Assembly: GCA_002104905.1 (NCBI GenBank)
Contig: MCFE01000410.1
Span: forward strand, 1 to 64,000
DNA: 64,000 bases
Direction: 5' to 3'
Source: Basidiobolus meristosporus CBS 931.73
Taxonomy: Eukaryota > Fungi > Basidiobolomycota
In this document: in pieces, positions 43,431 to 64,000 of the stretch
Layout: every line of letters begins with the position of its first letter
Position numbering within the stretch: position 1 is the first letter of the stretch
Program-made: the position numbers and the translations under genes
The notes under the pieces: model-generated
Seen by the model: only the letters and a program-made list of their open reading frames with translations
Databases searched by the model: none
What the model was told of the DNA's origin: nothing

Positions 43431-43604
43431 TTGGGACTTTACCTCTCTCTCTCTCCCCCCCTTCACTTGAGCATTTACGATCAGTCAGAATATGCTGGTT
43501 CATGACTGGTTTGCTTAGGATAGAAGACACCCAATGAAACAGCCATCAGATGTTTATTAGCAGGTCGCCAATTGAGTGGGGTAAGGTGGTGTGGCCAATG
43601 ACCA

Positions 43605-45937
43605 TCAGGGTTTAAGGGAAGTCAACATTTCCAACAGGTTTTCGTGGTTCTGCTGGACCTTCTGGATCAGATCGGCCAGCTCCAGGCCGGAGATCTCCTT
43701 CCCCTTGAGGGAGTTGATGGGGTGATGGAGGGTGGAGAATCGGGAGAGGTTCTGACGCTTCTGGTACTCCAGGTAGGTCTCCAGCTTCGTCTCCCCGTTC
43801 TCGAGTTCCACGTTCAAGGGGAGGAAACCGCGGGTGATTTGATGGGCCATGACGTCGTTCGCATCCGATTTCAGCTGCTCGTGGAGTATGGTGTCCAGCG
43901 CCTCGAAGGAGGGGCCGACCAGGTGTCGGGATTCGTGCCAGGCTATCAACATCAGGGGGGCCCACAGTAGCACACTGAGCACCGCGTGGTTCAGCCTCGC
44001 GTAGCCCTTCTCAGACATCACGAGCGAGGTGGGGATGATGAAGAGCACCTCGATAAGGTTCAGCGGGGCAGGGAAGGGGAACTGGTCCGGAGACTTCAGG
44101 TAGGAAAACACCTTGAACGTGAATAGGGCTAGGTACTCGCTCTCCGACTGCTCGGTGATCCGAGAGTAGGACGAGTTGAAGAGCGCCACCAAGATGTTCA
44201 GAAGCAGCACCACGGTGAAAAACAGGTAGAGGCCGAACAGGAACGCCCCGTACACGTTGTGATACTCTTCGGCCTGGGCGAAATTCGCATCCCTAAAGAA
44301 GGATGGTCATGGTTAGTACGAGCGGTTGGTGGGAACGTATCTCGGAACGGGGATCGCTTACGCAAGAAACGCCCTGCTCAATAGGCTGAACGTCGACAAC
44401 AGCCCCAGCTCGTCGTCCTTGTCGTTGCCCCCGCCGAGCGCGTAGAAGCTTTGAAGAAACCCGATAAATCCCCAAGGCAGGAGGGAGAAGAACATGAAAC
44501 TGTCCTTGATCATGGCTTGCAGTATGATGATCATGTTCCCGATGAATTTGAACCCGTCCAGCAGCGAGACCGTCTTCACCCACAGAAAGATCGCCATGAT
44601 GGAGAGCAAATCGTAGGCTATGTCGTTGTACGCGTCTTTCTTGTGGGCGTGATGGACGGTCAGGGCGAGGATCCTAAACGCGAACGAGACGAAAAACACC
44701 AGGTACATCCCGATGTTGATCCAATGCCAAATGCTGTAAAGATAGAACACCCCACCCTCGTAGATCTGCGAAGAGGGAATTGGTTGGTGAGCAGCTGGCC
44801 ACACAAGGGGTTCCCACACATCCTCTTACCAGTCGAATCTCCTCGAAGATGTATCCCATGACGAAAGTGTACATCATCCACTCTAGAGGCTCGGGCCGGG
44901 TCGTTCGGTTGTTCACCACGTACGTGTACAATGCCAGGAAGCCCAAAAAGTAGACGATTCGAAGGGCATCTTGATACCTAGAAGGGCCGGTTAGTGTCCC
45001 ACGCAACCCACCCGAAATTGACCGAACGGATTACTTGGGCACTTGAAGTCTCTCGGGGTTGAAGTACTGCCAAATGGATCCGGATGTGCTTTGCTCGTAT
45101 GCGACAAAGTAGGTGTTTCCGTTGGAATCTTCGTTCTGTAGGATCCCTCCTTCCCATATCGTCTGGAGATGGAATAGGCTTGGTTAGTGTTCCTTCGGGG
45201 ATGCCAACCGGATGCCCTTACGTTGATGCATTTCTGGACTTCATAGTCGCTTAAGAACATGGTGGCATGGATTTCGATGGCGATTTCGATGACTATGTGA
45301 GCGTAGCATCTTCAGTCACAAGGGTTGTGCCAGCAACAAGAGAAACACTTACCACAGCTAGCACTGGAAACCTCCTCTCCTTCCGCATGGTATTTTTGAA
45401 GGAGAACATTGAAATTCAAGGTGAGTCGGTTTTGGAAGGAATGCAACCTATATTCATGGGGAGTCATGTTTGATCAAAAGGGGCGATTTTGTCCGATCGA
45501 AACCACGTCTAAACCACTTACAAATTCTTCGCCAACACCTGGGCGGCCAGAGCTCTCTGTTGCATCAGAGAAGTCCAGGAGGCGTCTTTTTCCGCCTCGT
45601 GCTGGTATGCAGCAACACAGCGGAGAGCGCAGTAGATAACGTGGTAAGGTTCGACTACTTCTCCGTTCTGGCCGCCAGCTAGACGGGCCAGCTGGAGGGC
45701 ATATTGGACGGTGTCTTTGGTGATGATGGTGGAGTCACATCGGGTGATATCCTCCGGTTCGACCAGAGACGGTAGAACGCAGTTGATGAGGGAGAACAGG
45801 CCGGTGATGGTTTTACGAACTCTCTTGGCCTGACCTTGCGCGTCGTTCTCCGACAGGAACGCTGTGGTGGACTTTGCTGGCAAAAGGGGCTGTTGCTCGT
45901 CCGTCACCGAACCGGTACGGCTGTGAACATTAGACAT
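43605..45937 (-). CDS. YVC1: TRP-family vacuolar cation/Ca2+ channel, YVC1 (TRPY1)-like; 7 exons, 649 aa
   Basis: Exons 45937-45522, 45447-45353, 45292-45222, 45162-45035, 44977-44830, 44765-44362 and 44292-43605 total 1950 nt in frame, all with GT-AG introns. Motifs: RALAAQVLA, IEIAI..HATMFL..YEVQ..IN.IWEG, FNPERLQVPKYQ, LLLNILVALFNSSY and FPAPLNLIE. Confidence 0.88.
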
Positions 45938-46292
45938 GTTGCTTGATTTCTTCCTCCCTTGTCTTTGCTGGAAAATGGGGGACCGCTTAAAAGTGCAGTT
46001 GACTACAAGTTTGGTTTGGGTTCAGGCCCATAACATCCTAATCGTCCTAGTCATCCAAACTTCACCCTCGACCTTGATTTCTCACCCTGCTTCACCCCAC
46101 CCAGGTCTCAAAGTACGAATGTCATGGAACCTGTTTGGATGGAGTGTTGGTCGAACATGTGTTACCTCAGTTAATTTCTGGCTTACATCACGGGCACATC
46201 ACGGGCGGATATCGCGAATCAGAAGAAATCCAAATTTATTCACAAATCAACACTATATTACAAGGAGGTAGTTGAGGCGGTGGTGGCGAGCA

Positions 46293-47431
46293 CTAGGCCC
46301 AGATCCCGATCACTGCCATCACCGCCGCACCGCACCACAGCGCCAGGAAGCAAGCGCCCTTGAGTGTCACCGAGGATCGCATGAATACCGGGTTGTTGTG
46401 ATAGTCGGTGCTCATCAGCTCCACAAACGCCATGTAGAAGAGGATCCCGGCCGACACCGAGTCGAACACTCCGTTCACCAGCAAGGCGGTGGCACCGTGT
46501 GGGTTGTAGGTGCTGTGAATCCCAACCCCGATGGCCACTCCGGTGGGAGTGATAAGGGTGTACAACAGGGAGGACGCATACGCGAACGCACGGCTCTTTA
46601 TATTCAAGTCCTCCACGCGAGCACCCAGGGCGAGCCCTTCGAAGAATTGATGGAACACGACGGCGATGAGGAGGGAGGAGAACTCGCTTCCCGAAGCCAC
46701 TCCCACTGCGACCCCGATCAGCACCGAATGAAGGGCTATTCCAAACTCCAACAGGCAGGTGGAGATCGTACGATCGATCGTTTCTCCCTCCAGCAACCCA
46801 CCGTGGTGGTGATGACAACCGGACATCTCGGGGGACTTGTTCTTCTCCAGATCGGCCGAAGACTCGTCCGAGAAGTGAAACTCGGCTGAATCAGCGCCCC
46901 TCCTGGCTTGATACTTCTCGTAAATCACGCTTGCACCGTACTCGATCATCAGCAATGCCAGCGCAGACAGCATGGCAAACAATCCAGCCCACGCCTCGTA
47001 AACCTCACCGAACTCGCCGATACATGGGTTCGAGAGACTCTCCATAGCCCCAGGGAACATATGGATGAACCCGGTGGCCAGGATGACTCCGGTGCCGAAA
47101 TGTTTACCCACGGCGATGATATCCTTGCCAAGCTTGAAGTTTGGAAACGATCTGATCAGCATCGAGAAGAACGAGCCCAAAGCGCTCGTGCCCATGATGA
47201 TGAAAATTGCGCCGATGTGCAGGCCTTGCTTGTAGTCGGTAAGAGGCCCGCTCAAACAGGAGTCCTCCTCTGCGTCGAGCTCTACACAAGAGATTCAGGT
47301 AAGTTCGAGTCGGAGGGAAATAGTTGTCACTGGCGCATACCTTGCTTCAGCAAACGCTCGGCTCTAACGGATGGGATGGTGCACCCCAGGAAGACAATAA
47401 CAACAAGAGACGATAGAAAAAAATCACGCAT
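46293..47431 (-). CDS. ZIP-family (ZRT/IRT-like) zinc transporter with N-terminal signal-like peptide; 2 exons, 359 aa
   Basis: Exon 1 47431-47341 (MRDFFLSSLVVIVFLGCTIPSVRA...), intron gtatgc...tgtag 47340-47282, exon 2 47281-46293. Motifs KHFGTGVILATGFIHM, His loop CHHHH, LEFGIALHSVLIG and FHQFFEGLALG. Confidence 0.93.
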
Positions 47432-48186
47432 CGTTTCCGCAAGGTGGATATCAGCAGGGCGAGGGTCTCTTTATATCGGAGCTGATTTGATGGACTTCCA
47501 TATTAGGCGGTGACCACTCCTCTTGATTGGAAGCCAACCTGATTGCTCACTTGGGACGCATGTCATGAGTGGAAAAGGACCAAAATGACAGGCGTTCATG
47601 GCATTGCACGGCTGGCTTTACATGGTCATCCACACATTGACTCTGGCACTTGTGCGAATCAGGATCTAGAGCGCAGGGTACCCCATCGGTCATGACCGGC
47701 CAATCGCCTACAAGATGGAAACAATCCCCATGTGCCATTTTAAGCCAACATTGGCTTGGATTGTAATGGGATTTTTCGCGTGCTCGCCATTTCAGGCGGT
47801 CCAGAGAAAATTCCGCACTCGAATGGAAGAATGAATGCTTAGTTAGGATTGAGTTAATCCCTATTAGCGACCCAATGGTACGAGGCCGAGACCGGGTTCA
47901 TCTTGGGAATGGTACCTTATCGGCCCCATCCACCACCACCACATCCTTGTTCTCTATATGCGCACTCGATCTCTTAACCCAAGCGATTATAGCCAATCGC
48001 AATTTGCCCTGCATCCCGACGATTATACTGACGGGCAATCCGTAGAATGTCGGCAGCCTTGGCCATTGTGTGCATTGACTCACTGTAGCGAGATGAATTC
48101 TCCGTAATGGAGCCAACCTTGTACCGCGCTCTATAAATACCCCAATCCACTCATCATGCAGAGCATCAACCCCAAGTTCTATCAAC

Positions 48187-48726
48187 ATGCGCTTCATTTC
48201 TCCTGCCATCCTTCTTTCCCTGGTCGCTGTAGCCTGGGTGGCTGCTCTTCCAACACCACAGGCACCCGATTACGACGACGAAGTGGTATACCGGCCAGGC
48301 AAAACGATCCCTTCCGAGCCATATCAGAACCTGAAGGGGTATGTTCCACCCTATCCACCAGTGAATGAACCGTCGGAAACTGAGCACACCTCAGGAGATG
48401 CAGGCATTTCTCCAAATCCGGTGCCGACCTCCGGCCAAAGTTCTGGCAGGTGCTCAGACATTAAGGCGAATCTGATTGCTGAAGGACTGCGCGCTAAAGC
48501 CATTGTTTGTATTGAAGAACTCCTGGTGATTTATCCATTCAAGGCCATCGATGAGACCAAGCAACAGGGACCTTTCCCTGGCTTACTATCCACCCTTGGT
48601 GGTGCTGGCTCCAATAATGTGCAAGCCCATATGACCTGTGGGGCCATCCGAACTCGTCTCGAGGCCCTGGGAATCCAGTTGGAAGCGGAGATTTGTCTAT
48701 CTGGATTGATCCAGATCAGGCTCTGA
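48187..48726 (+). CDS. Secreted protein, 179 aa: Pro-rich linker plus two C-x18-C amphipathic repeats; function unknown
   Basis: Hydrophobic signal peptide MRFISPAILLSLVAVAWVAA. TATAAATA at 48132. Single exon. Confidence 0.8.
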   Translation: MRFISPAILLSLVAVAWVAALPTPQAPDYDDEVVYRPGKTIPSEPYQNLKGYVPPYPPVNEPSETEHTSGDAGISPNPVPTSGQSSGRCSDIKANLIAEGLRAKAIVCIEELLVIYPFKAIDETKQQGPFPGLLSTLGGAGSNNVQAHMTCGAIRTRLEALGIQLEAEICLSGLIQIRL

Positions 48727-49249
48727 CGTGACTATTCCGGATCCACGACTCAGATTAATCGTTGATCGATTGATATACCCCTGAATTCTTTATCTATGCT
48801 TCACTATTTGAGTATGTATACCGGAACCTCATCCCAGATCAATCAACTCACGATGGTCTAATAAAATCGCTTGTTTGAACCATTGAGCATAAAATCCAAA
48901 CAACCAAGATGCGTAACATCGCTAATCCTTGTGGAAAAAAGTCTACTGGCTGACTAACCAAGCGCATCATCATTAGATGTCTTTTCGATAGACTTCTAGT
49001 ATTTGTTGATACACTGGATTGTATTTGAAGCAGCTTTTTGGCACCTAGCTACTCGTATTTCTTAGCTATGTCATTAATGACCATTTACTAGGAAGTTATC
49101 TAGCCAGAGATTTGCTAATGCTGACATCAGATCTTTCAAAGTTACCCAAAAGACCACTGATATAGCACAAGGCTTTCAGGGGCTGTTCCCAAAACGTCAC
49201 CATCAATATTCTTACAGACACACTCAATGTCAATTCAAAATGGTAAAAT

Positions 49250-49440
49250 GGGTTGTAAGAGTTTTGGAGATATTAGAAGTGATTGGGAGGACAAGTAGAT
49301 TAAGTAGTTCTCACTCAATGATTTACTGGATGTAAAACTAGTATTTATACTTTGACATGGTCATGGCAAAACAAACACGTAGAATATGTTTAGGAAGGTC
49401 CCAAGAACACGTGTGCAAAGCTCTGGTAGGGAAACTTGGT
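49250..49440 (-). repeat. Degraded copia LTR fragment
   Basis: ttggagatattagaagtgattgggaggacaag...ggaaggtcccaagaacac is the reverse complement of the 349-bp copia LTR. Confidence 0.7.
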
Positions 49441-51025
49441 ATATATATACAGAGCTCCATTTCAGCCCAGCACCATAGGTGAATAGCATTCAATTCGTGG
49501 AGTTCCCCAAACCACTTCCAGTATTCTGTAAAGCCATGCTAAAAATAGTGGAAACTGGTGCAAATAGCGACCAAATATTGCGAGCTTCCCGTGTCCTTTT
49601 AACCGGCCAGAGAGCCATCCTTAGTAAGCTTTCCACCAGTTTACAGGAAAGGGGGGGAGGTTCAAGATGACATTTCACCCTACTTACAACCACGAGTATT
49701 TATTTGTCAATTACTGTGGATAATGCACGTAGCTAGACTTCACAATTGAAAATGAAGGGCGTTTTATATTTTGCTTAGTTCCTGACAGAAATTTCGCCAA
49801 AATCCAAGGCCGGTTCAACAAGCCAGAGTTAGGGGTCATATTAGAGTCCAATACCGCATGAAATTCATTGACACAGGTATGGAAAAGCCAAGCCTGGCCC
49901 GCAAGTTATGAGAAGATTCGTGTTCATGACTCATGACTCATACTCGTGGATGGGATGGAGGTCTCCAGATGAGGAAGGTAGGAGGAGTACCAGCAAAAAA
50001 ATCCAAGTCAGACAATTTTACTAGCTCCAATAATGTCTCGAAGCCAAAGTGGACCAATCAGGGAGCTGACTGAAAGCATTTCTTGGGCCGCTCTTGGGTG
50101 AAGAGTTGCCAACCAAAGCTAACGCGACTGCTCAAGGTCGATCCATTGGACAGCACCATCCGGAATACACCATAGTCTCTATCGAGGCAATGGGGCTACA
50201 GTGGGAACGAATGATGCTCCAAAGTGAACCCGTCAATTGGCCAATCGACGGTGCCTTGTGGTACGGCAAGTAGTGGAGAGGATGGGTCTCTTCTTCCTTG
50301 TCGGTTGGTTACTTTACCCATTTAGCAGCAAATCAGCGATCTTATTTGGCGTTGGAGAACGTTAGAATCGAGCCAAATATGGATGAAAATAGCATTCAGA
50401 AAACGCATCTGGCACAATGACGCATAATACTGCTGGCCCATGCAACAAACCTGGCTGCCAACAGTCTCATGAACGCCGGTTGTTATATATGGCCATCATG
50501 CAAGTCGCGTGCACCCGGGAATCTCCACCAATGCCACGCAGGGTCTCGACGAGGTCCACATCTGTAATTCAAGATCGCAATGGACGGTGCCATCGAGCCA
50601 TACATCGAGGATTCGATGTGACTCATGCACGCGATCCTTCCAACGATCGTTGTGAATCAAAAAGAGGAAATCTTTCACGCCACCGAAAACAACATTCTAA
50701 ACGGAATGCTCTGGTATTAGGCCATGCAGCGGTAATCCTTCGACTGGGAATAGTTACCCATATTCAGAGACAAGTGGCCAATGGTTGACATATTAACAAC
50801 AACAGGCGCTTTTGGATGACGCTGATACGACTCATGTAGATCTTGCCTAAAGTCATTGGCACATCGAGATGCCAGATGACCAGAACCGCGCTGGGTCGGT
50901 GCTATTACGAAGTGAGCACTCGTCCCGGGATATGGTATAGGTCAGTCTTTGCTCTCCACACAGATATAAATACCTGCCATCGAGCTTCAACGAGGTCTAT
51001 CAAGTGCAAGCTTCTTGCAAACGAG

Positions 51026-51823
51026 ATGAAGTTTCCATCTATTGTCGCCGCATTGACCGCCCTGGTACCCTTGAGTACTCACGCGGTCTCCATATATAAT
51101 TCGCCCTTTCTTGGGGACCTTCCCCTTCCGTTCATGAGTTTCGAGAGTAATATCGAGGTCTCTGTCGGCCATGACCCAGTGAACACTTACTGGTGTACCA
51201 ATGGGTTCAACCGTGGCTACATGGGTATTCAAGTTAACTCACCAACCGAGCGTCGTGTATTGTTCTCCCTATGGAACAAGGATGCCGAGAATCTGGCCAC
51301 CATTGTTGAGGTCGGAAAGAATGTGCAAACAAGTAAGTTTGGCCACGAGGGCACCGGAAGCCATGCTTGGCTGGTGCATGACTGGAAGGCTGGAGAGACG
51401 CAACGCCTCAAGGTAACCGCCGAATTCAAGGGAAATGACACCATTTATGGTGGGTACTACTGGCTTGACAACGAATGGTACTTGATCGCCAAGATCCTGG
51501 GCCCCAATTACGGCAATGAAGGATTAGGCTATTTCTACCAGTTCTTGGAGAACTTTGGAAAAGACACTAGTCAAACCCGTAGAGCGGTTTACAGCGGACA
51601 ATGTTACCGCTTGTTGGACAATGACTTCTGTTTCCCAGCCCTCGGAACCACCATTACTCACACATGGCCCATTGACACCAGCTACGGGGCAGGACTTAAT
51701 CCAAAAATGAACGGGGTCTACATGGCCATTGATGGAGAAGGAGATGGACCCGACTACAATCGTCCACCAGCCTACACCAAGTTGCAATACGACAACTGGA
51801 ATCTCATCTGGCAGCCAAACTAG
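51026..51823 (+). CDS. Secreted DUF3472-like protein, 265 aa, intronless
   Basis: True start is probably ATG 51026 (signal peptide MKFPSIVAALTALVPLSTHA; TATAAA at 50965). Motifs GYMGIQVNSPTERRVLFSLW, FGHEGTG, DWKAGE and FLENFG match my recollection of DUF3472. Confidence 0.8.
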   Translation: MKFPSIVAALTALVPLSTHAVSIYNSPFLGDLPLPFMSFESNIEVSVGHDPVNTYWCTNGFNRGYMGIQVNSPTERRVLFSLWNKDAENLATIVEVGKNVQTSKFGHEGTGSHAWLVHDWKAGETQRLKVTAEFKGNDTIYGGYYWLDNEWYLIAKILGPNYGNEGLGYFYQFLENFGKDTSQTRRAVYSGQCYRLLDNDFCFPALGTTITHTWPIDTSYGAGLNPKMNGVYMAIDGEGDGPDYNRPPAYTKLQYDNWNLIWQPN

Positions 51824-52684
51824 ATCTATGACATGAGTAGAAGCCGAGCTGAAGTTTTGTAGAATAAAAAGAAGTACTTTAACGTTTACTGAAATCACTC
51901 CTATCGATGAAGTCAATGGTTGGTAGTTTAGCAACACATGAATGAGGGCTTAGGCAACCACTGACATCTGGAACAACTTCTTGGCATAGAAGTGGGTCGA
52001 GAAAAGCCTAAACTGAGATACAGCTTCTGCTCAGCTCTAGTGTGCTGAATGCTAATTAATGGAGTAACTATTGAACCGATTTCAGGTATGAAAGTTTGCC
52101 TTTAGCGAAACATAATGCGTTTTGTATATGGGGCCGGGGGATGCTCATACTACCCCATGTAACGCTGTGTGACTACCAACCAACCATGGCTCATTCTTGC
52201 ATGGCTAAAAATGGCCCGCTACCAAGGTTAGGCTTAGGCTGGTTAGACCCAATCCAATCATTCTCATTTCCCAAATTCTGAGGAATCGACCCACCTCAAG
52301 CGCCGGTACCGACGGGTAACCAACCTCAACTTGATTTGCGTCTATTTAACCACTTTAGCTTATCAGTTGGACCCACACGGATCGCTGATTGTGGGCTCAG
52401 GTCAGACGAAAGTGAAAAAAATCCTTAAAATGGAAGCAGAGTTGGTATATCACATCACCCTTGTCCAACCAATTTCAATTCCGAGATTCTTCGTCTCATG
52501 GATCCTGGTTATACTACTGAATAGCAACCTTCAATCACTCAGAGCAAAATTGTAAATCGTCAATGCAATTGGGCTTCAGGTTCAAGCTTCTTTCGATCGG
52601 GAAGCAACCCAAATCCGTTGTCGCCTCAATAACCGCTTTTCTGTCTTGAGCACTCGTGCGGTTTCCGAGTTGGATTATCACCAC

Positions 52685-52772
52685 CTCCTCACAGACATTC
52701 CTAATTCTCCTCACAGACATTCCTAATTCTCCTCACAGACATTCCTAATTCTCCTCACAGACATTCCTAATT
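52685..52772 (+). repeat. Perfect tandem repeat, 4 x 22 bp (ctcctcacagacattcctaatt)
   Basis: Read directly from the sequence. Confidence 0.95.
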
Positions 52773-53322
52773 CACTTCAAGGTCACTCTCAACTCTGAGC
52801 CATGATATGGTATCATTTCGGGAAATTCAGCCATGTGCCTTACGTGTGCAACCAATAAAGCAATTTCCATTGATTTGCGATTCCGGGATTATGCAGCACG
52901 TGACTCATGCTCGTCCCAAACCAAATATGGGTTGGGGAGTGTGTTGACTGATGCTGGCAGATCTTGGCCGGAAGTGGTGAGCATTGCTGACTTGGATGGA
53001 ATGCTTCGTGAAAGGACAATTAGCGCCATAATCATTGCCAAGACAGTATTCTAGATACACCGTTCATCAAGTATAAACTAATTCGTCGACAATTGATCAC
53101 GTTTTCTTGGCTATAAGGCTAGATCTCTTTTATTACCAAACTCGCTATTCTGCCGGTCTCTAGTAAACAGTGGAGCCTTCAGCAATTTCTTGGTTTAATC
53201 TGGAGACATGAAACTCAGAAAACTAAGGCATTATGAATACAGATCACCTTGTCGCCGCAGCTAATAACGCTATAAATATAGACTATTGCTCACCTCAGTC
53301 CACTATCTAAACTCGCAACGCA

Positions 53323-53664
53323 ATGAAGTATCTCGCCGCCAAATCTCTCGCTGGTCTTGCCATCGTCTTAGCCGTCTCCGCCTCTGAGTACTTCCCCTTC
53401 AAGTATCCCACTCCGTGCATCACCGAGTGCTCCGTAAAGGCTGGTCAGGAGCTCATGGCCCACTACACCCAGGACTCTAGCAGCCCATACTTCATGGAGT
53501 CTCTCGGATTGCTTTGTGACTCGGAGAACCCCGACCAGGTCTCGTTCATGGTGAAGAGTGCCGAGTGTATCTTTGGTCAGTGCAATGGCTTTTCAGACAT
53601 CTCAAAGTTGACGGCCCTTGAGGGGCAGATTTGTCAATGGTATGCCGAACATCAAGAGCGTTGA
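53323..53664 (+). CDS. Small secreted six-Cys protein, array copy 1 (113 aa)
   Basis: Signal peptide (~20 aa) and C-x3-C-x28-C-x16-C-x4-C-x16-C. TATA box ~50 nt upstream, AATAAA downstream. Confidence 0.9.
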   Translation: MKYLAAKSLAGLAIVLAVSASEYFPFKYPTPCITECSVKAGQELMAHYTQDSSSPYFMESLGLLCDSENPDQVSFMVKSAECIFGQCNGFSDISKLTALEGQICQWYAEHQER

Positions 53665-54578
53665 GGCTACCCACAGCCTAATTCAATGAAATAAATGCAG
53701 AAAAAGTGAACTATTGTTAATATCCGTGGTCATTTGTTGCTGCCCCACAGTTAGTGTAATATTCTACCTGCTATCTGACTGAATACTCGTTCCACGTTTT
53801 ATCAATGTTGGGTGATCTTCCAGAAAAGAAGCAGACCTTCGACTTGCACTCCTTGAAGTTAAAGAGCTTTAGGACCATCTAAATTAATTCAAACCTGCAA
53901 TACCTGGGCGACAAGCGCGGCATGTGTCATTGAAAAAAGTTGGGTCAGCTTTGGAAAATTGGTAATGATTCGATTTTATCAATAAATGTCAGATGCCAAT
54001 GCAGTGGACATCCTGGAATGTTTTGTACATATGAAGTAGCCACTGTTCTACGAAATAGCATTAGTGATGAAGATCGCCATTTTCCAGACTATGGCTAGTT
54101 AACAAGCAACTATGCAAATCGCCTTGAAGGGACCGGCAGCACTTAACCCATTCGTGAACACTAGCCATACCGAGTCTCCAAGTCGATCAAAATTTGTATT
54201 CACTGACCATTTCATTTCAAATACATATAGTAGGCGAGCCATGAGTCAGAGTGCTCAGAAGAACTTGTGGCTTGGATAATAGGACCACTGGCATCATGGC
54301 GATTCTAGAACCCGGTTCATTGCCAAGACAATCATCTGGATGGATCTCCCATCAAACAGGGAGATTCGTCTTCAAATCACCACGTATACATAGACCCCGT
54401 GATTACCAAACATGCAGCTCTATCCGTTTCTGACTGCCAGATGAGTTCTACTCCAGCAAGCTGACTTTCGGTACTTGTCCATGGCAATGTTCCTCAGATT
54501 ATAGGCCCATAAGATGTTACAACCGCTATAAATATGGGCGATCCCTCACCTCAGCTCACTATCTAAACTCGCAACGCA

Positions 54579-54920
54579 ATGAAGTACTTCGCCGCCAAAT
54601 CTCTCGTTGGTCTTGCCATCGCCTTGGCCGTTTCTGCTTCTGAGTACTTCCCCTTCAAGTATCCCACTCCGTGCATCACTGAGTGCTCCGTAAAGGCTGG
54701 TCAGGAGCTCATGGCCCACTATACCCAGGACTCTAGCAGTCCATACTTCATGGAGTCTCTCGGATTGCTTTGTGACTCGGAGAACCCCGACCAGGTCTCG
54801 TTCATGGTGAAGAGTGCCGAGTGCATCTTCGATCAGTGCGATGGAATTGCAGACATCTCCAAGCTAATGGCCCTTGAGGGTCAAATTTGTCAATGGTATA
54901 GTGAGCATAAATCTATCTAA
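54579..54920 (+). CDS. Small secreted six-Cys protein, array copy 2 (113 aa)
   Basis: As copy 1; residues 21-84 identical. Confidence 0.9.
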   Translation: MKYFAAKSLVGLAIALAVSASEYFPFKYPTPCITECSVKAGQELMAHYTQDSSSPYFMESLGLLCDSENPDQVSFMVKSAECIFDQCDGIADISKLMALEGQICQWYSEHKSI

Positions 54921-55696
54921 GTCCCTTTATACCCACGTGCAATAAACAAACTAAATTAGTAATGATGCAAAGGAGTGAACTACTGCTCAGCGTATTGTTC
55001 AATTCAGGAGGATGTGAGAGGAAACAATGATTATTCTGCCATCGAAGCTACCTGTTACTAGGGATGACACGACTAGCTTGATAGTTGAGGCAAATACTAA
55101 GCGGGGAATCGAATTCGGTTTCCCTGTTAACCCTGTCCATGTAGCCATGATTGCACATCGTAATAGATTAGTCATAAAGTAGCATGCAAAATCCAAAAGT
55201 GGATCTATCAAGAACGAGAAAATAACATATGTATATCTTATATCACCATCGAAGTCCCTAAGAAAGTAACCTCACCGATGACTGAATCAGAGATTAGTAA
55301 TCTTGATATTAGTTTACTGAGCCAGATCCAAGCGGAATTGGAACGATTTGGATAGCCGAAAACAACCCAACACCTCGGGGATAGCTTCGTACATACTAAT
55401 GTGACTCTAAAAGGCCAGCGTTGCCAAGTTAATTTTCTGGACGGTTCCCTCGGCAAACAATCACGAGTTGGTTCACCGCTGATCACTAATACATGGTCTA
55501 AGGGCTAGAACCCCGAGACTACCAGTCTGGCTATTCAATCCGTTTCTGGCCAAGGGAAGTATTCTACACCAGCATTATACTTGAAGATATACCTCATGAA
55601 GAATGGGAAATGGAAAGCTAAGCTTCGGAAGGAACTCAAAGTACTATATATATGGGCTATTACTCACCTCAGCTCACTATCTAAACTCGCAACGCA

Positions 55697-56038
55697 ATGA
55701 AGTACTTCGCCGCCAAATCTCTTGCTAGTCTTGCCGTCGCCTTGGCCGTTTCTGCTTCTGAGTACTTCCCCTTCAAGTATCCCACTCCGTGCATCACCGA
55801 GTGCTCCGTAAAGGCTGGTCAGGAGCTCATGGCCCACTACACCCAGGACTCTAGCAGTCCATACTTCATGGAGTCTCTCGGATTGCTTTGTGACTCGGAG
55901 AACCCCGACCAGGTCTCGTTCATGGTGAAGAGTGCCGAGTGTATCTTTGATCAGTGCGATGGAATTGCAGACATCTCCAAGCTAATGGCCCTTGAGGGGC
56001 AAATCTGCCAATGGTATGCCAAGCATAAATCTGACTAG
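55697..56038 (+). CDS. Small secreted six-Cys protein, array copy 3 (113 aa)
   Basis: As copy 1; residues 21-84 identical. Confidence 0.9.
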   Translation: MKYFAAKSLASLAVALAVSASEYFPFKYPTPCITECSVKAGQELMAHYTQDSSSPYFMESLGLLCDSENPDQVSFMVKSAECIFDQCDGIADISKLMALEGQICQWYAKHKSD

Positions 56039-56980
56039 GATCTTTCACAACTATATTCAATAAATCCAATGAATAATGATACGACCCAAGCGAGTTGTTT
56101 ATCATATTGAAGTTTTAGTCACTAGTCTGCTATCACACATTGCCACTACCCAGATGTCAGCAACCAGCTGGAGTTTATCTGTTTTCATTCGCTTGACAGT
56201 TAACTGGCCTAAACGGTAGCACATGCCCCAAGCCAGCACCGCTAAAGCGGGTAAGTGCCCTCGCGAGTCTATATTTCTGATAAACCCTTCGCATGCACTT
56301 TGATGCTCCTCGTTATGATGAAATTCGCTGATTAGCGTAATAGGCAACCAAGTAACGCTGATTCTCTTCTCTTTATCCGCGGGATAACGATCGTCCTTTT
56401 ATATCGATGGCATTTCGTACCCGTCGCATGTCCTTGACACCTGGTACTACCAAACATATCTGCACTGTAATGAATCGTGGGGTGGGGGGGGGGAATTGGT
56501 AGAACTGCTATGGTCCGGGCTCAATCGCGCTCAGGATTCGATGAAAGTGGACTAGAGTCATGGTGTAATGTGTGAGATCAAATATTAATGTATCGAACGC
56601 CATTGCCATTCAACCAATTTGTAGTGGCATTCATGATGCCATTTGCCACTATCCGGAGTAGCGGTTATAGGTTCGCCATCAGGAAATCGCAACGAGTTGC
56701 TCTTCACCCAAGTTATAATTCTAGATTCAACACATTGCCAAGACAATATTCTGGATCGATCTCGCATCAAACAAACGTGGATTTGTCGTCAATTGACCAC
56801 GTATACGTGGCTTTAGGGCTAGAACCACAAGGTTGCTTGCTCGCATGACTATCTGTGTACGGCAGGCAAACGAGTCTTGCTCTAGTAATTGCTCATGTTC
56901 CCTTTGCCTTATAAGAGGCTTAAAGCACTATAAATAAGAACCACTCTTCAACTTAGATAGTTATCTAAACTTGAAACACA

Positions 56981-57322
56981 ATGAAGTACTTCGCCGCCAA
57001 ATCTCTTGCTGGTCTTGCCGTCGCCTTGGCCGTTTCTGCTTCTGAGTACTTCCCCTTCAAGTATCCCACTCCGTGCATCACCGAGTGCTCCGTAAAGGCT
57101 GGTCAGGAGCTCATGGCCCACTACACCCAGGACTCTAGCAGTCCATACTTCATGGAGTCTCTCGGATTGCTTTGTGACTCGGAGAACCCCGACCAGGTCT
57201 CGTTCATGGTGAAGAGTGCCGAGTGTATCTTTGATCAGTGCGATGGAATTGCAGACATCTCCAAGCTAATGGCCCTTGAGGGGCAAATTTGTCAGTGGTA
57301 TGCTCAGCATAAAGAAAATTAA
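56981..57322 (+). CDS. Small secreted six-Cys protein, array copy 4 (113 aa)
   Basis: As copy 1; CDS nearly identical to copy 3 although the 5' leader is diverged. Confidence 0.9.
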   Translation: MKYFAAKSLAGLAVALAVSASEYFPFKYPTPCITECSVKAGQELMAHYTQDSSSPYFMESLGLLCDSENPDQVSFMVKSAECIFDQCDGIADISKLMALEGQICQWYAQHKEN

Positions 57323-57966
57323 GGCTGTTTACAGTACTTCATAATAAAGCAGCGGAATTAAAACCCGACCCTAAATGATGTAGAAAAAAGAGAGGTATTT
57401 TTCAGAGTGCTGGTAAAGATGAGTGAGAGAGAAAGCCAATTCATTATTCCTCGGAATAGTTCTGGTAAGAATGTTGTGACCAGTGCATGTAGCTATGGTT
57501 GTTGATAGTATTTGGGTGGTTTAGCCAGGCCTATCTAGTATCGGAGATTAGCAATCTTGATATTAGTTTACCGAGCCAGATCCAAGTGGAATCGGAATGA
57601 ATTGGATAGCCAAAAACGACCCAACACCTCGGGGATAGCTTCGTAGACACCAATAAGGCTCTAGAATGCTCGCATTGCCAAGTCAATTTTCTGGACGGTT
57701 CCCTTATCAAGCAAGTGCGAATTGGTCCACAATCGACCGCTCATTTATAGCCCAAGGGCTAGAACCCCAATATTACCAGGCTCGCGATTCCATCCGTTTC
57801 TGGCCAACGAAAGTATGCTACTCCAGTAATTTGTCTTGCTGCCGTTGTACCTGAAGATAACCCTCTTGAGAAATAGGAAATGGAAAGGCAAGCCTCATGA
57901 GGAGCTCATAACGCTATATATATGGGCTACTCCTCACCTAAGTTCTCTATCTAAACTCGCAACGCA

Positions 57967-58308
57967 ATGAAGTACTTCGCCGCCAAATCTCTCGCTGGTC
58001 TTGCCATCGTCTTAGCCGTCTCCGCCTCTGAGTACTTCCCCTTCAAGTATCCCACTCCGTGCATCACCGAGTGCTCCGTAAAGGCTGGTCAGGAGCTCAT
58101 GGCCCACTACACCCAGGACTCTAGCAGTCCATACTTCATGGAGTCTCTCGGATTGCTTTGTGACTCGGAGAACCCCGACCAGGTCTCGTTCATGGTGAAG
58201 AGTGCCGAGTGTATCTTTGGTCAGTGCAATGGCTTTTCAGACATCTCAAAGTTGACTGCTCTTGAAGGGCAAATCTGCCAATGGTATAGCGAGCATAAAT
58301 CCAACTGA
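57967..58308 (+). CDS. Small secreted six-Cys protein, array copy 5 (113 aa)
   Basis: As copy 1; shares its signal-peptide and residue 85-97 variants with copy 1. Confidence 0.9.
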   Translation: MKYFAAKSLAGLAIVLAVSASEYFPFKYPTPCITECSVKAGQELMAHYTQDSSSPYFMESLGLLCDSENPDQVSFMVKSAECIFGQCNGFSDISKLTALEGQICQWYSEHKSN

Positions 58309-59432
58309 GGTTTTCTGCAACAAAATACAATAAACCCAATGAAAAATGGCATGGAAATAGTGGATTCATTATTGTTTTTCTGGGATACTTCTCATAACGT
58401 TAATTGACTGAGACCAATCAAATTGTAATATTGGCATTGTCTAGTCGAAACAGGCGTTAATGCTTATGCTGGAGTTTTTGATATTTAAAGTGCATTCGAA
58501 AACCCCCATGATAATCTATTGGAACTCTCTGGGAAAGGTGGTTGCAATACTTGAGGCCTGAAATCATCGAACTCTGTATACTTACCGGTTATCCAAGAAA
58601 TAGACATGCCCACGAAATTCACCTGTGAACCTAAGCTTTTGTCAGGTCAATAAAATTTATCTTCAGCAAAGAATAACATCAATGGTGTAAGAAATCAAGG
58701 TACCAGTATCAGTTGACCCACTGATCTCACAACATAAGGGACAATCAAATGTAAGTGTCCATTGGAATCTTGCTTGTGCACTGAAAAGTATCCAAAATTA
58801 CTTGACATATAGGGGGTCAAATGAATCTGAATATTCCCGCTGAAACTGGTAGCCTAGTATTGCTTTACATCAATTAAACCAGATAGCACGACATGCTTTA
58901 TAATTTTTGGTTTAAGGCACGTATGCGAATTGTCTTCTGATGTATTGGATTTCCGCCTTGCTAATGTCAACTGTAGAGGTATTTAATGTACACGATAGAA
59001 ATACCACATGAGAATCAGCCAAAATCCGAATCTTAATCTCATCACTTTCAATAATTCAGGCTTGGAGGCTATGTTAGAGTATGTCGCTGTATGAAATGCA
59101 CACGCGTTCACGTGGAATATAATACATGGCCAGAAGTCATGAGTAATACACCATTTTTGGAGCACACAGCAAATATTGGGGAAGCAGAGAAATATTTGCT
59201 AAAATCGAATTGCACACTCATTTTACGATTATCGCAAACAGAATTTGGTGCAGTGAATGTTCAAAAACCATAGAGTTGACTAAACAGCCACATATGAATG
59301 CATAACCCCTTGATTTTCCTTAATCCCTGCAAACACCACACTCCATTCTTACCCGTTTCACAATTTCTGTTCACGCCAATAATAAACCCTCTTTAGCAAC
59401 GAGAGTTGGCCAATTTTATTGAGAATTCTCTT

Positions 59433-59951
59433 TTAACTGTAATCGCCAGGAATGACGGTCCTGCATCCTTCGGTACTGAGCCCCATGTTGCAGTCATTCT
59501 TCTCATTACAACAGCGGATGCAGTACTCTCCAACATCAGGCTCGATCAAACTGACGAAGTAGGTGTAACCATCACATCCTGACTCCGGTGGGGCGCCTCG
59601 GTTGTCGAACTGGCCGCCACCATCGCTGCGTGACATGTTGTATGTTTCGGGGTTCATTTTACCAGTCACTTGGACGTAGGTGCCTGTCTGATTGAAGTGC
59701 GCAGTTTCAATGAATCCCTGTGGAAGTGGCAGCGCCTTGGGCGCCACCGAAGTTGGCTTCGTGCAGAATACCACTGCATCATGCTCATGCTGACCAATGA
59801 TCATTGCCGGCTTTGGAGGTAGGAAGAGGCAGAAATCGGTAGCATTGTTCACGACTGTGAGGTGGTTGATGCTGGGGTCGCCGACGGTAATGGGCTTACC
59901 AACAACTGAATAGACAGATAGTATTGTGCAAACCAGGTTTCGGATGAACAT
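59433..59951 (-). CDS. Secreted eight-Cys protein, 172 aa, resembling the fungal MP88/macrophage-activating-glycoprotein-like domain
   Basis: Signal peptide. Motifs DFCLFLPP...IG.HE..AVVFCT, YVQVTG, DGGGQFD and IEP...YCIRCC...GC. TATA-like box near 60006-60012. Family name is from memory. Confidence 0.75.
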   Translation of the reverse strand: MFIRNLVCTILSVYSVVGKPITVGDPSINHLTVVNNATDFCLFLPPKPAMIIGQHEHDAVVFCTKPTSVAPKALPLPQGFIETAHFNQTGTYVQVTGKMNPETYNMSRSDGGGQFDNRGAPPESGCDGYTYFVSLIEPDVGEYCIRCCNEKNDCNMGLSTEGCRTVIPGDYS

Positions 59952-61379
59952 CTCGAGTAAAGCTACTTGTTTGTTGAATGATCATTCTTCCCAGACCTGG
60001 TCTCATATTTATAATCCGTTTGTCAAGACCGATATATCTACCGAAATGCGTGGGCTCGGGTTTACGGCGGTAAACTGAGAATCACCAACGGCTCTAGTTG
60101 ATGCTCGGATCATAATGTGGCTTATCGGTGTCTTCTAGAGGGCGCCAACGCCAAAGAACGTCAACCTTATTAAACCGACCCTCACCACTCTACGAAATCG
60201 TGCCTGTTTTGGAAATACACTGAGTGAGTAATTTCTCAACATCCATCTGTCAACCGAGTACAAAATGACAGCGAGTAAATAGGAGTACAGCTGGCAATCA
60301 AAAATCAGTGGTCACGTCATGATGATGGCTATAGGATCCGTCCAAAGGAATGCGCCTGGTTAGTATTTGTCACTGCCGCCCTCGATAGAACTACTACGTA
60401 TTAGCAAAGCAGAGTTGTTCCATCAGATGTGTATATATGGATTTGGCAAGACTTTATATAGTCAAGTATTTGAATGTGACGAGTTTTACTAAACGGAAAT
60501 GGTAAATGTGATTCTCGGAAATTATCGAATTAGAAAATAGGATGTTTCTAAATCCCAAGAAATCACTGGGGATTGCGTTTCATTTTTCGATCAAGTCAAC
60601 AAAAATATCAGCAACTTCGCAAAGCTTTACGGAAGGTAAGAACCGTAACACATTCGATTCACCCACAATTTTACAAATCTCCAGAATTTCGAGTTGGTAA
60701 ATTCCTACTTACCGTTGTTGGGAAGATTAGTGTAGCTTTGATTCTTACCGATTTCTTATGGCCTGATCAAGGAGCTCACAATTCTCACCTGAGCAACGAT
60801 TGTAAGACTGCTCTGTAGCAGGCTCTTGACTCCAATTATTCATGGGATTTTTAAGCCTGATCGGTCACCAGTATTTGATTGATTATTAATAGATGACGTG
60901 CTGATAATGACATATTCGATTAGCTTAGCATCTATGTTAAAAATATTAGTTATTGACTCAGTTTTCAGCTTGTATGATTATGCAAAATTCACAGTTAAGT
61001 GGAAGCCTTGTAAATACAAAATCTCCGGCATATCCAAACTGCTAAGATTTTATCCTCTAGCACTTGGATATATCATTTGACTAATTGCCAGATTTTCAAT
61101 TATTAACTACATAAAACCACCATATAAAATCAGCTAAGATCAGTTACTTGATGAAATTCCTCAAATTTATCCAAAAGACCTATATGTATTTCCTTAACTT
61201 TCTGGGGCCATTCCTGCTACATTGTAAGATCTTACAATACAGATCACCTTCCTCCTGGTTGTTGTGAATTGTGTATTTACACCTAGATATTTACATTAGC
61301 TTATCTCAGTGTATAAGCTTTGCTATTTCCTGTCCAGATTATTTTCACTACAACATCAAGTACCCGAAATATGAGAATT

Positions 61380-61540
61380 ACCAAAGCTGTGTACCAAATG
61401 CCTCAAACTGTGCACCCATAATCTTGTGAGCTTTCTAAACATAATCCTTGAGTTTGTAATGTGAAAGTATAAGTACCGCTTATATATTCGATTAAGTGGA
61501 AACCACGCAATCTGCTAGTTGATCCAATCACAAGGAATAT
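61380..61540 (+). repeat. Highly degraded copia LTR fragment
   Basis: caaactgtgcac...aagtataagtacc...aagtggaaaccacgcaatc...ccaatcac parallels the 349-bp LTR. Confidence 0.5.
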
Positions 61541-63491
61541 TTCCTAAGCTCTTAGAACAATAATTTCCTCATTATCATTGCAAAAATATTTAGTCTAGTA
61601 CTTCTATTTTGGAAGTACTCTGTAGAATCAGCCGATTAAATCGATACCCATATATTGGACGACTCAAATATCAAGATGATAATAAGAGTAGAGTACAAGA
61701 TTATCCTCGGAAGTTATGTATAGTATAGCATGGGATCATTTGGGCAAGCTTCAAAATATCGATAGCTTCCGGAACTTGACTAATTCCATATTCCGTGGTC
61801 CAACAATTAGTGAAATGGAAACTTCAATGTATCATTCGGACGCTAAACTAAAGAACATATATAGAATTGCCCAGTCACTGGAAGCCTTGAGTTTGGCGGA
61901 AGGTATTCGGAGATTTCTGGTGGCACTAATGCTGCATCAGAGTTTGGTGGTTTTCAAGCGCCTATACCGAGGTTCGGTTGGGTAAACAATTTACCAAGCG
62001 ATGAAACTATCCTGAACACCAGGGAATCCCAATATTTGCTTGTATCACCCAGTTTGGTCGAAATTACCAAGATCATCGTTCAGGTTAACCTTAAAAAGGC
62101 TTCGGAATCTATCAAGCCACTAAAGGCTTGGGATACGCGGAAGTCCGAGGAAGTAGGGCCAATGAATATCGCTTAAACTGGAGCCGTGTGAGGGAATCGA
62201 CATCAGTTGCAGTAGTAAACTAACAGGGCCAATCACACTCATTTGATTCGTGATCCAAGCGGATTTTATAGGTAAAGACTAAACATCACATAACTTAGCA
62301 CGCATACCGACATTCCTTATGTTCCAATTCCCTGATATTGACTAGTCAATCCACAGAAGCCCTTCATGACGCATAGTTGAGGCATTCTGGGCTAGCGCCA
62401 TTAGGAAAGGGTGCAAATTACTCGGGCAGTACATTAATTTGTGAGACAAACATAAGAAATCTTTGTCCATTACATGTCCTAAACACCGATGGAAGAATAC
62501 AATCCAAGATGTTTCGCACTTCTTCAAAGGTCAAATTTGACTACCGGGTATCAAATCGGCTTACGTACCAACCATCAAGACCTTTGTCGCATGTACGTAG
62601 TTCTTTGCTAGTTAAAATAACCAAGTAACTGAGTTGGCGGATGGGACTATAAGAATTCGTAGGATTACCGGCCACTTCAGAACTCCATATAATTCTAGAA
62701 AAAAGGTCTGTGAGGATATATCTCTAGGGGCACATCCAGCTGTTGATAATTGGTACGGCAGAATGAAGTCCACATATCCAGGTCCAGTTTAGGACTTAGT
62801 TCTCGGCTAGATCAAATCAATCCAAAATTGGATAAAGCCCCGGCTTCCTTGTCGTGTCCAATTGCAACCAATCTAGTATGGGCCCATTCTGCACCTCTCT
62901 CTTCACTCTCTACTCCATTGTGACATACGACGATGTATTTCACCCTCACTGCCTCTCTCTACATCCATCTCCGAAGTCCACCACATCATCCAAGGTATAA
63001 CTTACTTATCATACCTAGCCGTCTTGGGAGTCAAAAAGATTTTTCGGATTCACCAAATGATTGGAAGTATTAAGGGAACCATATACCACTTATAGAATCA
63101 GTGTTAATCAGGAGCATCACTACCTATCTGGGTATATGAAGTTTTCATTTTTAGATTTTTGATTTAGTGCCAAATCGGGTAAGTTACGATTAAGGTACCA
63201 CCAAAAATAGAATATTTCCAGGTTTGCCAAGTTTACCTATTTAGGCCTGAGACATAAAGAGGAACTCGGGTTGACATGAGAGACAAATGTGGTAAAAGTT
63301 AAGAAACTGTATACCATAATGGAGAGTTACCTTGATTAGGTAAAGATGTCATTGATGTCCATTTGGTAAACATGGTAGCGGATATTGTCGGATCGTGATT
63401 ATAAATACCAAGTGTTTCAGCAGGCTGTCAACCAAAAATCTTTTTCACACCACCAATCTTCCTATCCTTCCACGGCAGATCTTAATCCAAA

Positions 63492-64000
63492 ATGAGACTC
63501 GTCCCCAGAGAAATGGATAAGCTTATGCTTCACCAAGTCGGCTACTTGGCCCAGATGCGTCTTGCCAGAGGTATCCAGCTCAACCACAGTGAAGCCAGCG
63601 CCCTCATCGCCTCCCAAGCCTTGGAATTCATGAGAGATGGTAAGCACTCTGTTGCCGAAATCATGGACCTCGGTCGTCAGTTCTTGGGTAGAAGACATGT
63701 CCGTCCTGCTGTTATGGCTACTCTTCACGAGGTGCAAATCGAGGGTACCTTTACCGAGGGTACTTTCTTGGTTACCATTCACGATCCCATCTGTACCGAT
63801 GATGGTAACCTTGAGCTTGCTCTTTATGGATCCTTCTTGCCTATCCCATCCATGGATATCTTCCCCGCTGTCGCCCCCGTTGATAAGAAGGCTCTTCCTG
63901 GATCTTTGGAGCTTCGTACCGAAAAGATCGTTCTTGTCCCCAACAGAGAGCGTGTCGCTGTCGTTGTTACTAACAATGGTGACAGACCCATCCAAGTTGG
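63492..64000 (+). CDS. URE1: Urease, eukaryotic fused gamma-beta-alpha type; 5' part only, runs off the window
   Basis: MRLVPREMDKLMLHQVGYLAQMRLARGIQLNHSEASALIASQ...EVQIEGTF..GTFLVTIHDPI...VTNNGDRPIQVG. TATAAATA at 63400. Not in the ORF track because the stop lies outside the window. Confidence 0.96.
   Translation, partial: MRLVPREMDKLMLHQVGYLAQMRLARGIQLNHSEASALIASQALEFMRDGKHSVAEIMDLGRQFLGRRHVRPAVMATLHEVQIEGTFTEGTFLVTIHDPICTDDGNLELALYGSFLPIPSMDIFPAVAPVDKKALPGSLELRTEKIVLVPNRERVAVVVTNNGDRPIQV

Follow-up and report, generated by a model that had tools for sequence, protein, structure and literature searches.

In this study we examined the first 64,000 nucleotides (positions 1–64000) of scaffold MCFE01000410.1 (79,838 bp) from the fungus Basidiobolus meristosporus CBS 931.73, a stretch of DNA that we refer to as the window. 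Toward its right-hand end lies an array of five open reading frames (ORFs) arranged head to tail on the forward strand, each 342 nt long (113 amino acids plus stop), and all five are present in the deposited annotation. Copy 1 occupies positions 53323–53664, copy 2 54579–54920, copy 3 55697–56038, copy 4 56981–57322 and copy 5 57967–58308, with start-to-start distances of 1256, 1118, 1284 and 986 nt. We use the term core for nt 61–252 of each coding sequence (CDS), which corresponds to positions 53383–53574, 54639–54830, 55757–55948, 57041–57232 and 58027–58218 in copies 1 to 5, respectively. Copy 1, for which a JGI gene model is present, encodes a predicted signal peptide (residues 1–21) followed by a mature protein with six cysteines. 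The array was initially noticed in a first-pass annotation made from the letters of the DNA, which described five head-to-tail genes for 113-residue proteins with an invariant peptide at residues 21–84. Comparison of the ORFs and of their peptides bears out both parts of this description.

Each of the genes carries its own putative expression signals. Sequence comparison places a TATA box at −52 of every ATG (positions 53271–53278, 54527–54534, 55645–55652, 56929–56936 and 57915–57922, forward strand), and in all five copies the box is followed by a conserved leader of 40 nt. Likewise, a hexamer resembling a poly(A) signal is located 21 nt past the stop codon of every copy.

The DNA encoding residues 21–84 is nearly as uniform as the peptide. 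Copies 3, 4 and 5 are letter-identical over CDS nt 61–252, and copy 1 differs from them by a single synonymous substitution at nt 162, in agreement with the first-pass annotation. Copy 2 was credited there with two synonymous differences in the core, and the actual number of such private changes is four (nt 102, 144, 246 and 252). Outside the core, residues 85–97 exist in two forms, one in copies 1 and 5 and the other in copies 2, 3 and 4, and the end of the signal peptide (nt 44–60) is split in the same manner. The C-terminus is split differently, with Ser108 found in copies 2 and 5. All of these divisions are as previously claimed. Only 5 of 192 columns are variable in the core, compared with 40 of 147 over the remaining CDS (Fisher p = 1.4×10−11), and for third codon positions the corresponding fractions are 5/64 and 21/49 (p = 2.5×10−5). 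This contrast between core and ends is far beyond chance. The GC content of third positions (GC3) is 0.75–0.77 in the core versus 0.41–0.70 in the ends; the high value of the core fits GC-biased conversion, and fits codon bias equally well.

The sequences between the genes have a very different appearance. Mean pairwise identity is 0.2–0.6 in the spacers, rises from about position −55, attains 0.96–1.00 at nt 61–252 and falls again in the last 90 nt of the CDS, and identity past the stop codon, in the 3′ untranslated region (UTR), is ∼50%. When copies are compared in pairs, core identity is 97.4–100%, whereas most spacer pairs share only 35–60%. The exception is the spacer between copies 2 and 3, which is ∼80% like that between copies 4 and 5 (positions 55286–55572 are ∼82% identical to 57540–57826, both on the forward strand), while every other spacer pair falls in the 35–60% range. 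This likeness points to an ancestral two-gene duplication in which copies 2 and 3 gave rise to copies 4 and 5. A conserved 41-nt element is also found ∼250–290 nt before each ATG (53033–53073, 54318–54358, 55419–55459, 56733–56773 and 57673–57713, forward strand; 71–100% identity). Because this element is common to all spacers, the spacers share an ancient common origin, and the element may be a shared regulatory site. The array must be old, since its spacers can hardly be aligned any longer. For the same reason, Tandem Repeats Finder did not detect the five-copy array when run on the window.

Synonymous divergence (dS) follows the same profile along the gene, with values of 0–0.53 in codons 1–20, 0–0.145 in codons 21–84 and 0.26 to over 2 in codons 85–113. 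For example, copies 4 and 5 have no synonymous differences at the 38 synonymous sites of the core, versus 12 differences at 16 such sites in codons 85–113. Heterogeneity of this kind at synonymous sites is beyond the reach of selection acting at the protein level.

Informative sites group the five copies in mutually conflicting ways. The outermost sites (−64 to −47 and nt 309–373) pair copy 3 with copy 5 and copy 2 with copy 4. In contrast, all 16 informative sites at nt 44–290 set copies 1 and 5 against copies 2, 3 and 4, none of them lying inside the core at nt 61–252, and within the last 35 nt the partitions {2,5} and {1,4} appear. The ancestry of the spacers (3 with 5, 2 with 4) therefore conflicts with that of the middle of the CDS (1 with 5; 2, 3 and 4 together). 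This is most easily seen in copy 5, whose upstream spacer is like that of copy 3, yet whose CDS is like that of copy 1 over nt 44–290. In total, no single tree can accommodate 457 of the 946 pairs of informative sites, and these conflicts cluster along the sequence (pairwise homoplasy index, p = 0.0004–0.004). A Sawyer-type test reveals a run of 25 concordant polymorphic sites, unbroken between copies 3 and 4 from nt 40 to nt 306 (global p = 1×10−4), and weaker tracts for copies 2 and 3 and for copies 2 and 4. Given the incompatible partitions and the significant tract, there is no one phylogeny that is consistent across CDS segments and flanks. The CDSs are more alike than the age of their duplication allows, and their mosaic ancestry goes beyond a shuffling of sites.

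The five copies are very highly transcribed, as indicated by the contigs of a sequencing run (X3) with the characteristics of RNA. Contig depth in this run is 2,000–27,000 over the CDSs versus 2–13 over the spacers. One contig carries an Illumina adapter tail at its end, and another skips 77 nt with GT..AG ends; we infer that the run is RNA from these three features together. Depth is ∼15,000 over the copy-specific 3′ half of copy 1, 7,597 for a copy-2-specific contig (54795–54860) and 23,361 for a contig that represents copies 3 and 4 together (57197–57262). Contigs of run X3 cover the 3′ parts of all five copies, although most of them fit more than one place, such that attribution to individual copies is uncertain.

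The skipped segment is an optional 77-nt GT..AG intron in copy 2 (54896–54972, forward strand), seen in a joint with a depth of 1,892 and consistent with sequence and translation. Splicing joins codon 106 to a downstream exon with a stop codon at 55028–55030, and thereby exchanges the last seven residues for an 18-residue tail with one extra cysteine. The deposited 124-residue model of copy 2 (ORX89953.1) places the junction (54897/54975) 3 nt away, which gives the intron non-canonical AT..GA ends. Therefore, the actual tail of the spliced form starts with Ser and not with Cys.

Homologues from another strain and from other species provide a measure of how these genes behave elsewhere. One 714-nt contig was used from a run (X4) attributed to another strain, which shares the B. 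meristosporus label while its codes for organism and sample differ. Its homologue differs from copy 1 at no fewer than 22 of the 192 core sites, with 13 synonymous codons and seven residue changes, and hence the core is free to vary. This homologue also mixes residues from both forms of segment 85–97. Set against the 0–5 core differences within the array, the at least 22 of the X4 homologue make the paralogues the more alike, a pattern that is established only in part for Basidiobolus, given that the homologue may be a paralogue.

For comparison, the two genes of a tandem pair from a sister subfamily in Basidiobolus ranarum are distinguished by 37 of their 360 CDS sites. Of these differences, 31 are at third positions, and they are evenly spread; the intron region of the pair is ∼48% alike. 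This pair is an internal control that has undergone ordinary divergence without homogenization. It had been a candidate for a third homogenized array, and was ruled out as such by its evenly spread, ordinary differences. The 119-residue single-domain subfamily of B. ranarum comprises 11 members at ≥90% identity, several of which occur as adjacent pairs on contigs of ∼3 kb, and this arrangement suggests a larger tandem array that is fragmented in the assembly. The pair examined here is 10% diverged and has an intron.

A replicate of the Basidiobolus pattern is found in Mucor. Four tandem genes of the family, encoding 125-residue proteins, are present in Mucor saturninus and three in Mucor mucedo, at syntenic positions beside the same Itfg2 and PMSR genes. 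Within each species the spacers are unalignable (∼30–60% alike) while the CDSs are 95–99% alike. Between the species, however, the spacers are positionally orthologous at 87–94%, and so the array is older than the split of M. saturninus and M. mucedo. Despite this age, M. mucedo copies 1 and 3 are only 4 nt apart, versus distances of 18 nt (copy 1 of M. mucedo to copy 1 of M. saturninus) and 12 nt from their own positional orthologues, and copies 1 and 2 of M. saturninus are likewise separated by 4 nt. Paralogues that are closer to each other than to their orthologues constitute the classical proof of concerted evolution. The conserved block in Mucor extends from about −75 to +93, roughly the span of one transcript. 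With regard to copy number, the spacer ahead of copy 2 in M. mucedo corresponds to the one ahead of copy 2 in M. saturninus, and the spacer behind it corresponds to the one behind M. saturninus copy 3; these hybrid surroundings indicate that the difference between three and four copies arose by unequal crossing-over or by duplication of one unit inside the array.

The five paralogues are complete, arranged in tandem and strongly transcribed, and we consider it probable that their transcribed part has been overwritten repeatedly by interlocus (ectopic) gene conversion. The first-pass annotation had already proposed that ectopic conversion homogenizes the core, and this proposal is now strongly supported by the heterogeneity of dS, the greater age of the spacers, the incompatible partitions, the tract shared by copies 3 and 4, the diverged X4 homologue and the Mucor arrays. 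Conversion tracts presumably need matching sequence on both sides. The center of the CDS would then fall inside most conversion events and become identical, and identity at the center would in turn favor more conversion there. The edges of the CDS would escape more often and retain older differences, leaving a nested mosaic. Its outermost layer would follow the history of the spacers (2 with 4, 3 with 5), a second layer at nt 44–290 would follow older conversions (1 and 5 versus 2, 3 and 4), and the innermost layer, the core at nt 61–252, would be homogenized over all five copies. The selective background for this process is likely to be dosage, in which many copies supply one abundant product, and not diversity.

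Several points weigh against this interpretation. The individual conversion events are inferred and not observed, and several of the pairwise Sawyer runs lack individual significance after global correction. The single X4 contig may represent a paralogue and not an orthologue. Run X3 is labeled ‘DNA?’ by the tool that was used. Very high expression could also place a codon-level constraint on the core, as the high GC3 suggests.

The closest precedent comes from the ribosomal-protein paralogues of fungi, in which CDSs are near-identical while flanks are divergent. Conversion of these genes has occurred repeatedly and in parallel among lineages, Mucoromycota included, has been tied to very high expression and explained by dosage, and has been proposed to use cDNA donors (PMC6993855). 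The B. meristosporus array resembles this system in its similar CDSs, divergent flanks and very high expression. Unlike the ribosomal-protein genes, which are dispersed housekeeping genes for cytosolic proteins, the array consists of head-to-tail genes for a predicted secreted protein. Moreover, its homogenized block comprises only the central 190–270 nt of a 342-nt CDS, with edges that form a nested mosaic. For highly expressed duplicate genes of fungi, concerted evolution restricted to the CDS is already known.

The same precedent raises the possibility that the donor in the array is reverse-transcribed mRNA, a process that extreme expression would favor. Homogenization is indeed confined to the transcribed region, where it begins close to the TATA box and leader, the genes are intronless and transcribed at very high levels, and the conserved block in Mucor has about the extent of one transcript. 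Donors of this type have been argued for where the CDS, and not introns or flanks, is homogenized (PMC6993855). However, cDNA primed at the poly(A) tail should favor the 3′ end, and in the array homogenization is poorest in the 3′ third of the CDS and in the 3′ UTR, a difference from the ribosomal-protein genes that speaks against a cDNA donor. In addition, the tract shared by copies 3 and 4 stops inside the CDS, and the array genes have no constitutive introns that would permit a decisive comparison of intron and exon. We therefore rejected cDNA as the main donor on the basis of the poorly homogenized 3′ end, and regard conversion templated by transcripts as quite unlikely here.

The mosaic ends could also be viewed as cassettes that generate diversity, with conversion shuffling the N- and C-terminal modules of an effector or surface antigen. 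Contingency families such as the MSG genes of Pneumocystis and the VSG genes of trypanosomes are subtelomeric or tandem, and are both homogenized and shuffled by conversion. The array resembles them in its tandem copies, in paralogues made mosaic by conversion and in a position that is possibly near a chromosome end, 21.5 kb from the end of the 79.8-kb scaffold. The X4 homologue, in combining both forms of segment 85–97, and copy 2, in acquiring an alternative C-terminal tail by splicing, are also in keeping with modular variation. The first-pass annotation had likened the array to effector or surface-antigen arrays. The mosaic is real, but the comparison is unsupported, as the ratio of nonsynonymous to synonymous divergence (dN/dS) in the variable ends is 0.08–0.35 and never above 1. 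Furthermore, the N-terminal variation falls within the hydrophobic stretch of what is predicted to be a cleaved signal peptide, and the mature protein is mostly identical among copies. Promoter elements and RNA-like contigs are found on all five genes, and hence the array lacks both silent donors and a single expression site of the kind used by MSG and VSG families. Neither silent donor copies nor diversifying selection was found in the array. Ordinary genes (urease and DUF3291 genes) lie between the array and the scaffold end, and the sample in which expression is high was presumably a culture. Collectively, the low dN/dS and the expression signals on every copy lead us to read the variable ‘modules’ as edges of conversion tracts: they look like edges that have not been erased, and not like diversity cassettes maintained by selection. 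An array that serves to diversify its product is, in our view, very unlikely.

Gene conversion would be unnecessary if strong purifying selection acted on both the protein and the codons of an extremely highly expressed gene, with ends and spacers left to drift. The very high expression, the core GC3 of 0.75–0.77 and the location within the core of most residues that are near-invariant in the family would all be expected under such constraint. Nevertheless, the X4 homologue carries 13 synonymous and seven amino-acid changes in its core, and the 31 third-position differences of the B. ranarum pair are evenly spread. Selection also could not produce the incompatible partitions or the tract shared by copies 3 and 4, and it does not explain why Mucor paralogues are closer than positional orthologues. 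These observations already largely refute constraint without conversion, which we judge highly improbable.

The accuracy of the assembly was assessed by comparing the window with Logan contigs of two Illumina DNA runs from the same sample. The Illumina contigs match all four spacers, both outer flanks and every copy-specific CDS end with no mismatches, and break only where copies share sequence. One 193-nt contig from the core has a word depth of 612 versus ∼220 for the single-copy spacers, a nearly three-fold excess that is expected for sequence exactly common to copies 3 to 5. No alternative letters in any core are reported in the Illumina contigs. The sole disagreement with the assembly is an extra G after position 56483, in the spacer between copies 3 and 4, which is present in both Illumina runs at full depth; its omission is probably an indel error of one base in the assembly. 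The assembly also includes MCFE01001109.1 (16.8 kb), a redundant and unpolished contig that duplicates window positions 43311–54290. When aligned over copy 1, this contig differs by 1–2-nt indels alone, mostly in short runs of one base, and its 52-residue protein, ORX67703.1, is an artefact produced by a frameshift in copy 1. Although this poorly polished duplicate and the indel error in a spacer show that the assembly has flaws, it is scarcely credible that the identical cores were created by assembly or by polishing, through consensus calling over mis-mapped reads, given that both Illumina runs match all copy-specific sequence exactly, that a variant letter in one of five copies would be common and none is seen, that core depth is what three exact sharers should yield, that the private core changes of copies 1 and 2 were not lost in polishing, and that two independent Mucor assemblies have the same pattern.

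The protein encoded by the array begins with two Lys residues, a stretch of Leu, Ala, Ile and Val, and Ser-Ala-Ser before Glu22, features that by standard rules predict a cleavable signal peptide. Its cysteines are at positions 32, 36, 65, 82, 87 and 104. A word-indexed protein search recovered only the cluster to which the protein itself belongs, and its relatives came from an exhaustive phmmer search, which yielded 64 cluster representatives at E ≤ 1×10−3, including 24 at E ≤ 1×10−10. Twenty representatives were looked up and, apart from one unnamed ENA record, they derive from Basidiobolus, Mortierella, Linnemannia, Haplosporangium, Mucor, Absidia, Phascolomyces and Halteromyces; the named ones among these 20 belong to Basidiobolus, Mortierellaceae and Mucorales. 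Residues C32, C36, S60 and C82 are invariant in the family, and G41, D51, F57 and C87 are found in at least 90% of members. Judged by whole-domain similarity and these invariant residues, the proteins form an unnamed family with a wide distribution among zygomycete fungi.

Members of the family carry eight (22 members), six (14 members) or four (6 members) cysteines, and these vary in pairs: C65 and C104 are lost together, and extra N- and C-terminal cysteines are gained together. This paired behavior predicts a disulfide between C65 and C104, with C32 and C36 pairing with C82 and C87. AlphaFold2, when supplied with the family alignment, models a four-helix domain with a mean pLDDT of 87 (∼95 over the mature part). 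The product is thus predicted to be a small secreted protein composed of a signal peptide and a four-helix domain of ∼90 residues with three disulfides. Some relatives have domain matches in two to nine stretches, and some have Ser/Thr-rich stalks and hydrophobic C-terminal tails. Pfam scans covering three proteins, 44 family members and 10 long relatives returned no family, the repeat proteins giving summed matches without a significant single stretch; the only credible extra domain in these scans is a C-terminal CBM19 chitin-binding module in one relative. A profile search of PDB sequences yielded only spurious antibody light chains, Foldseek against the PDB and VIA-align gave nothing at E < 2 or Z ≥ 5, and a shape search of the ESM Atlas gave no meaningful fold match. 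The earlier statement that the protein could not be assigned to a named family is therefore correct insofar as no Pfam model exists, and incomplete in that there is a clear family of 64 cluster representatives.

The CFEM domains (PF05730) of Dikarya are secreted or GPI-anchored, cysteine-rich helical domains, some of which are haem carriers, and they contain eight cysteines in a characteristic spacing. The array protein is similar in having a predicted signal peptide and a small, all-helical domain predicted to be stapled by disulfides, and among its relatives it is common to find a Ser/Thr-rich stalk and a hydrophobic C-terminal tail, or several copies of the domain. Weak Foldseek matches in the AlphaFold database (AFDB) beyond the family itself are mostly CFEM proteins (E 0.18–0.86, TM 0.39–0.52), and CFEM effectors and Ccw14 appear among Swiss-Prot entries at weak E values of 1.0–1.5. 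Three B. ranarum members of the family are named ‘CFEM domain-containing’ in UniRef, and the nearest language-model neighbors of the array protein are CAP22 and CFEM clusters. However, the Pfam CFEM model matches none of the five copies and only 1 of 44 family members, at E = 0.49, and TM-scores against predicted CFEM models reach no more than 0.41–0.53. In contrast to CFEM domains with their eight cysteines, the array proteins have six, and the eight-cysteine forms of the family add a pair at the far N and C ends. The protein may be a distant relative of CFEM. It would work as a small, secreted or wall-associated helical module that might bind a ligand or the cell wall.

A broader hypothesis would hold that CDS-limited homogenization is a built-in property of this protein family. 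Recombination that is transcription-coupled or transcript-templated would maintain identity within single-domain tandem arrays, and would do so separately in Basidiobolus and Mucor, hence in two phyla, since a zygomycete counterpart of CFEM ligand carriers would be needed in large, uniform amounts. We find this rather unlikely, and offer it as speculation.

The protein family itself is undescribed as well as widespread. The domain defined here occurs widely in zygomycetes, is very highly transcribed in B. meristosporus, is weakly CFEM-like, and is without a Pfam model or solved structure. These properties recommend it for structural and functional work on the cell surface of early-diverging fungi, which include opportunistic pathogens such as Basidiobolus and Mucorales. 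The array is an unusually clean natural case of conversion tracts nested in a gene of 342 nt, with three layers of ancestry in one locus, and the Mucor replicate allows homogenization to be dated against a speciation event.

Other genes surround the array. Upstream are genes for a TRP-like channel and a ZIP transporter, a 179-residue ORF and a BPSS1860-domain gene. Downstream are a minus-strand gene for a putatively secreted cysteine-rich protein, a gene for urease and two DUF3291 genes. The first of these is an annotated ORF of 172 residues located directly past the array (59433–59951, minus strand), which has a signal-peptide-like start, many cysteines and no Pfam match. Its language-model neighbors (0.95–0.96) are clusters common in Mucoromycota, some of which are automatically named ‘mp88-like mannoprotein’, and one structure-based neighbor is automatically named ‘allergen’. 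The urease gene, a complete fusion of gamma, beta and alpha domains (835 residues), extends from 63492 to the end of the window at 64000 and onward to scaffold position 65999 (forward strand), and the two DUF3291 genes follow it toward the scaffold end. An Rfam search of positions 50000–62000 found no RNA family. Finally, a 22-nt unit (CTCCTCACAGACATTCCTAATT) is present in four perfect tandem copies at 52685–52773, ∼550 nt 5′ of copy 1, where it is flanked by degenerate copies.

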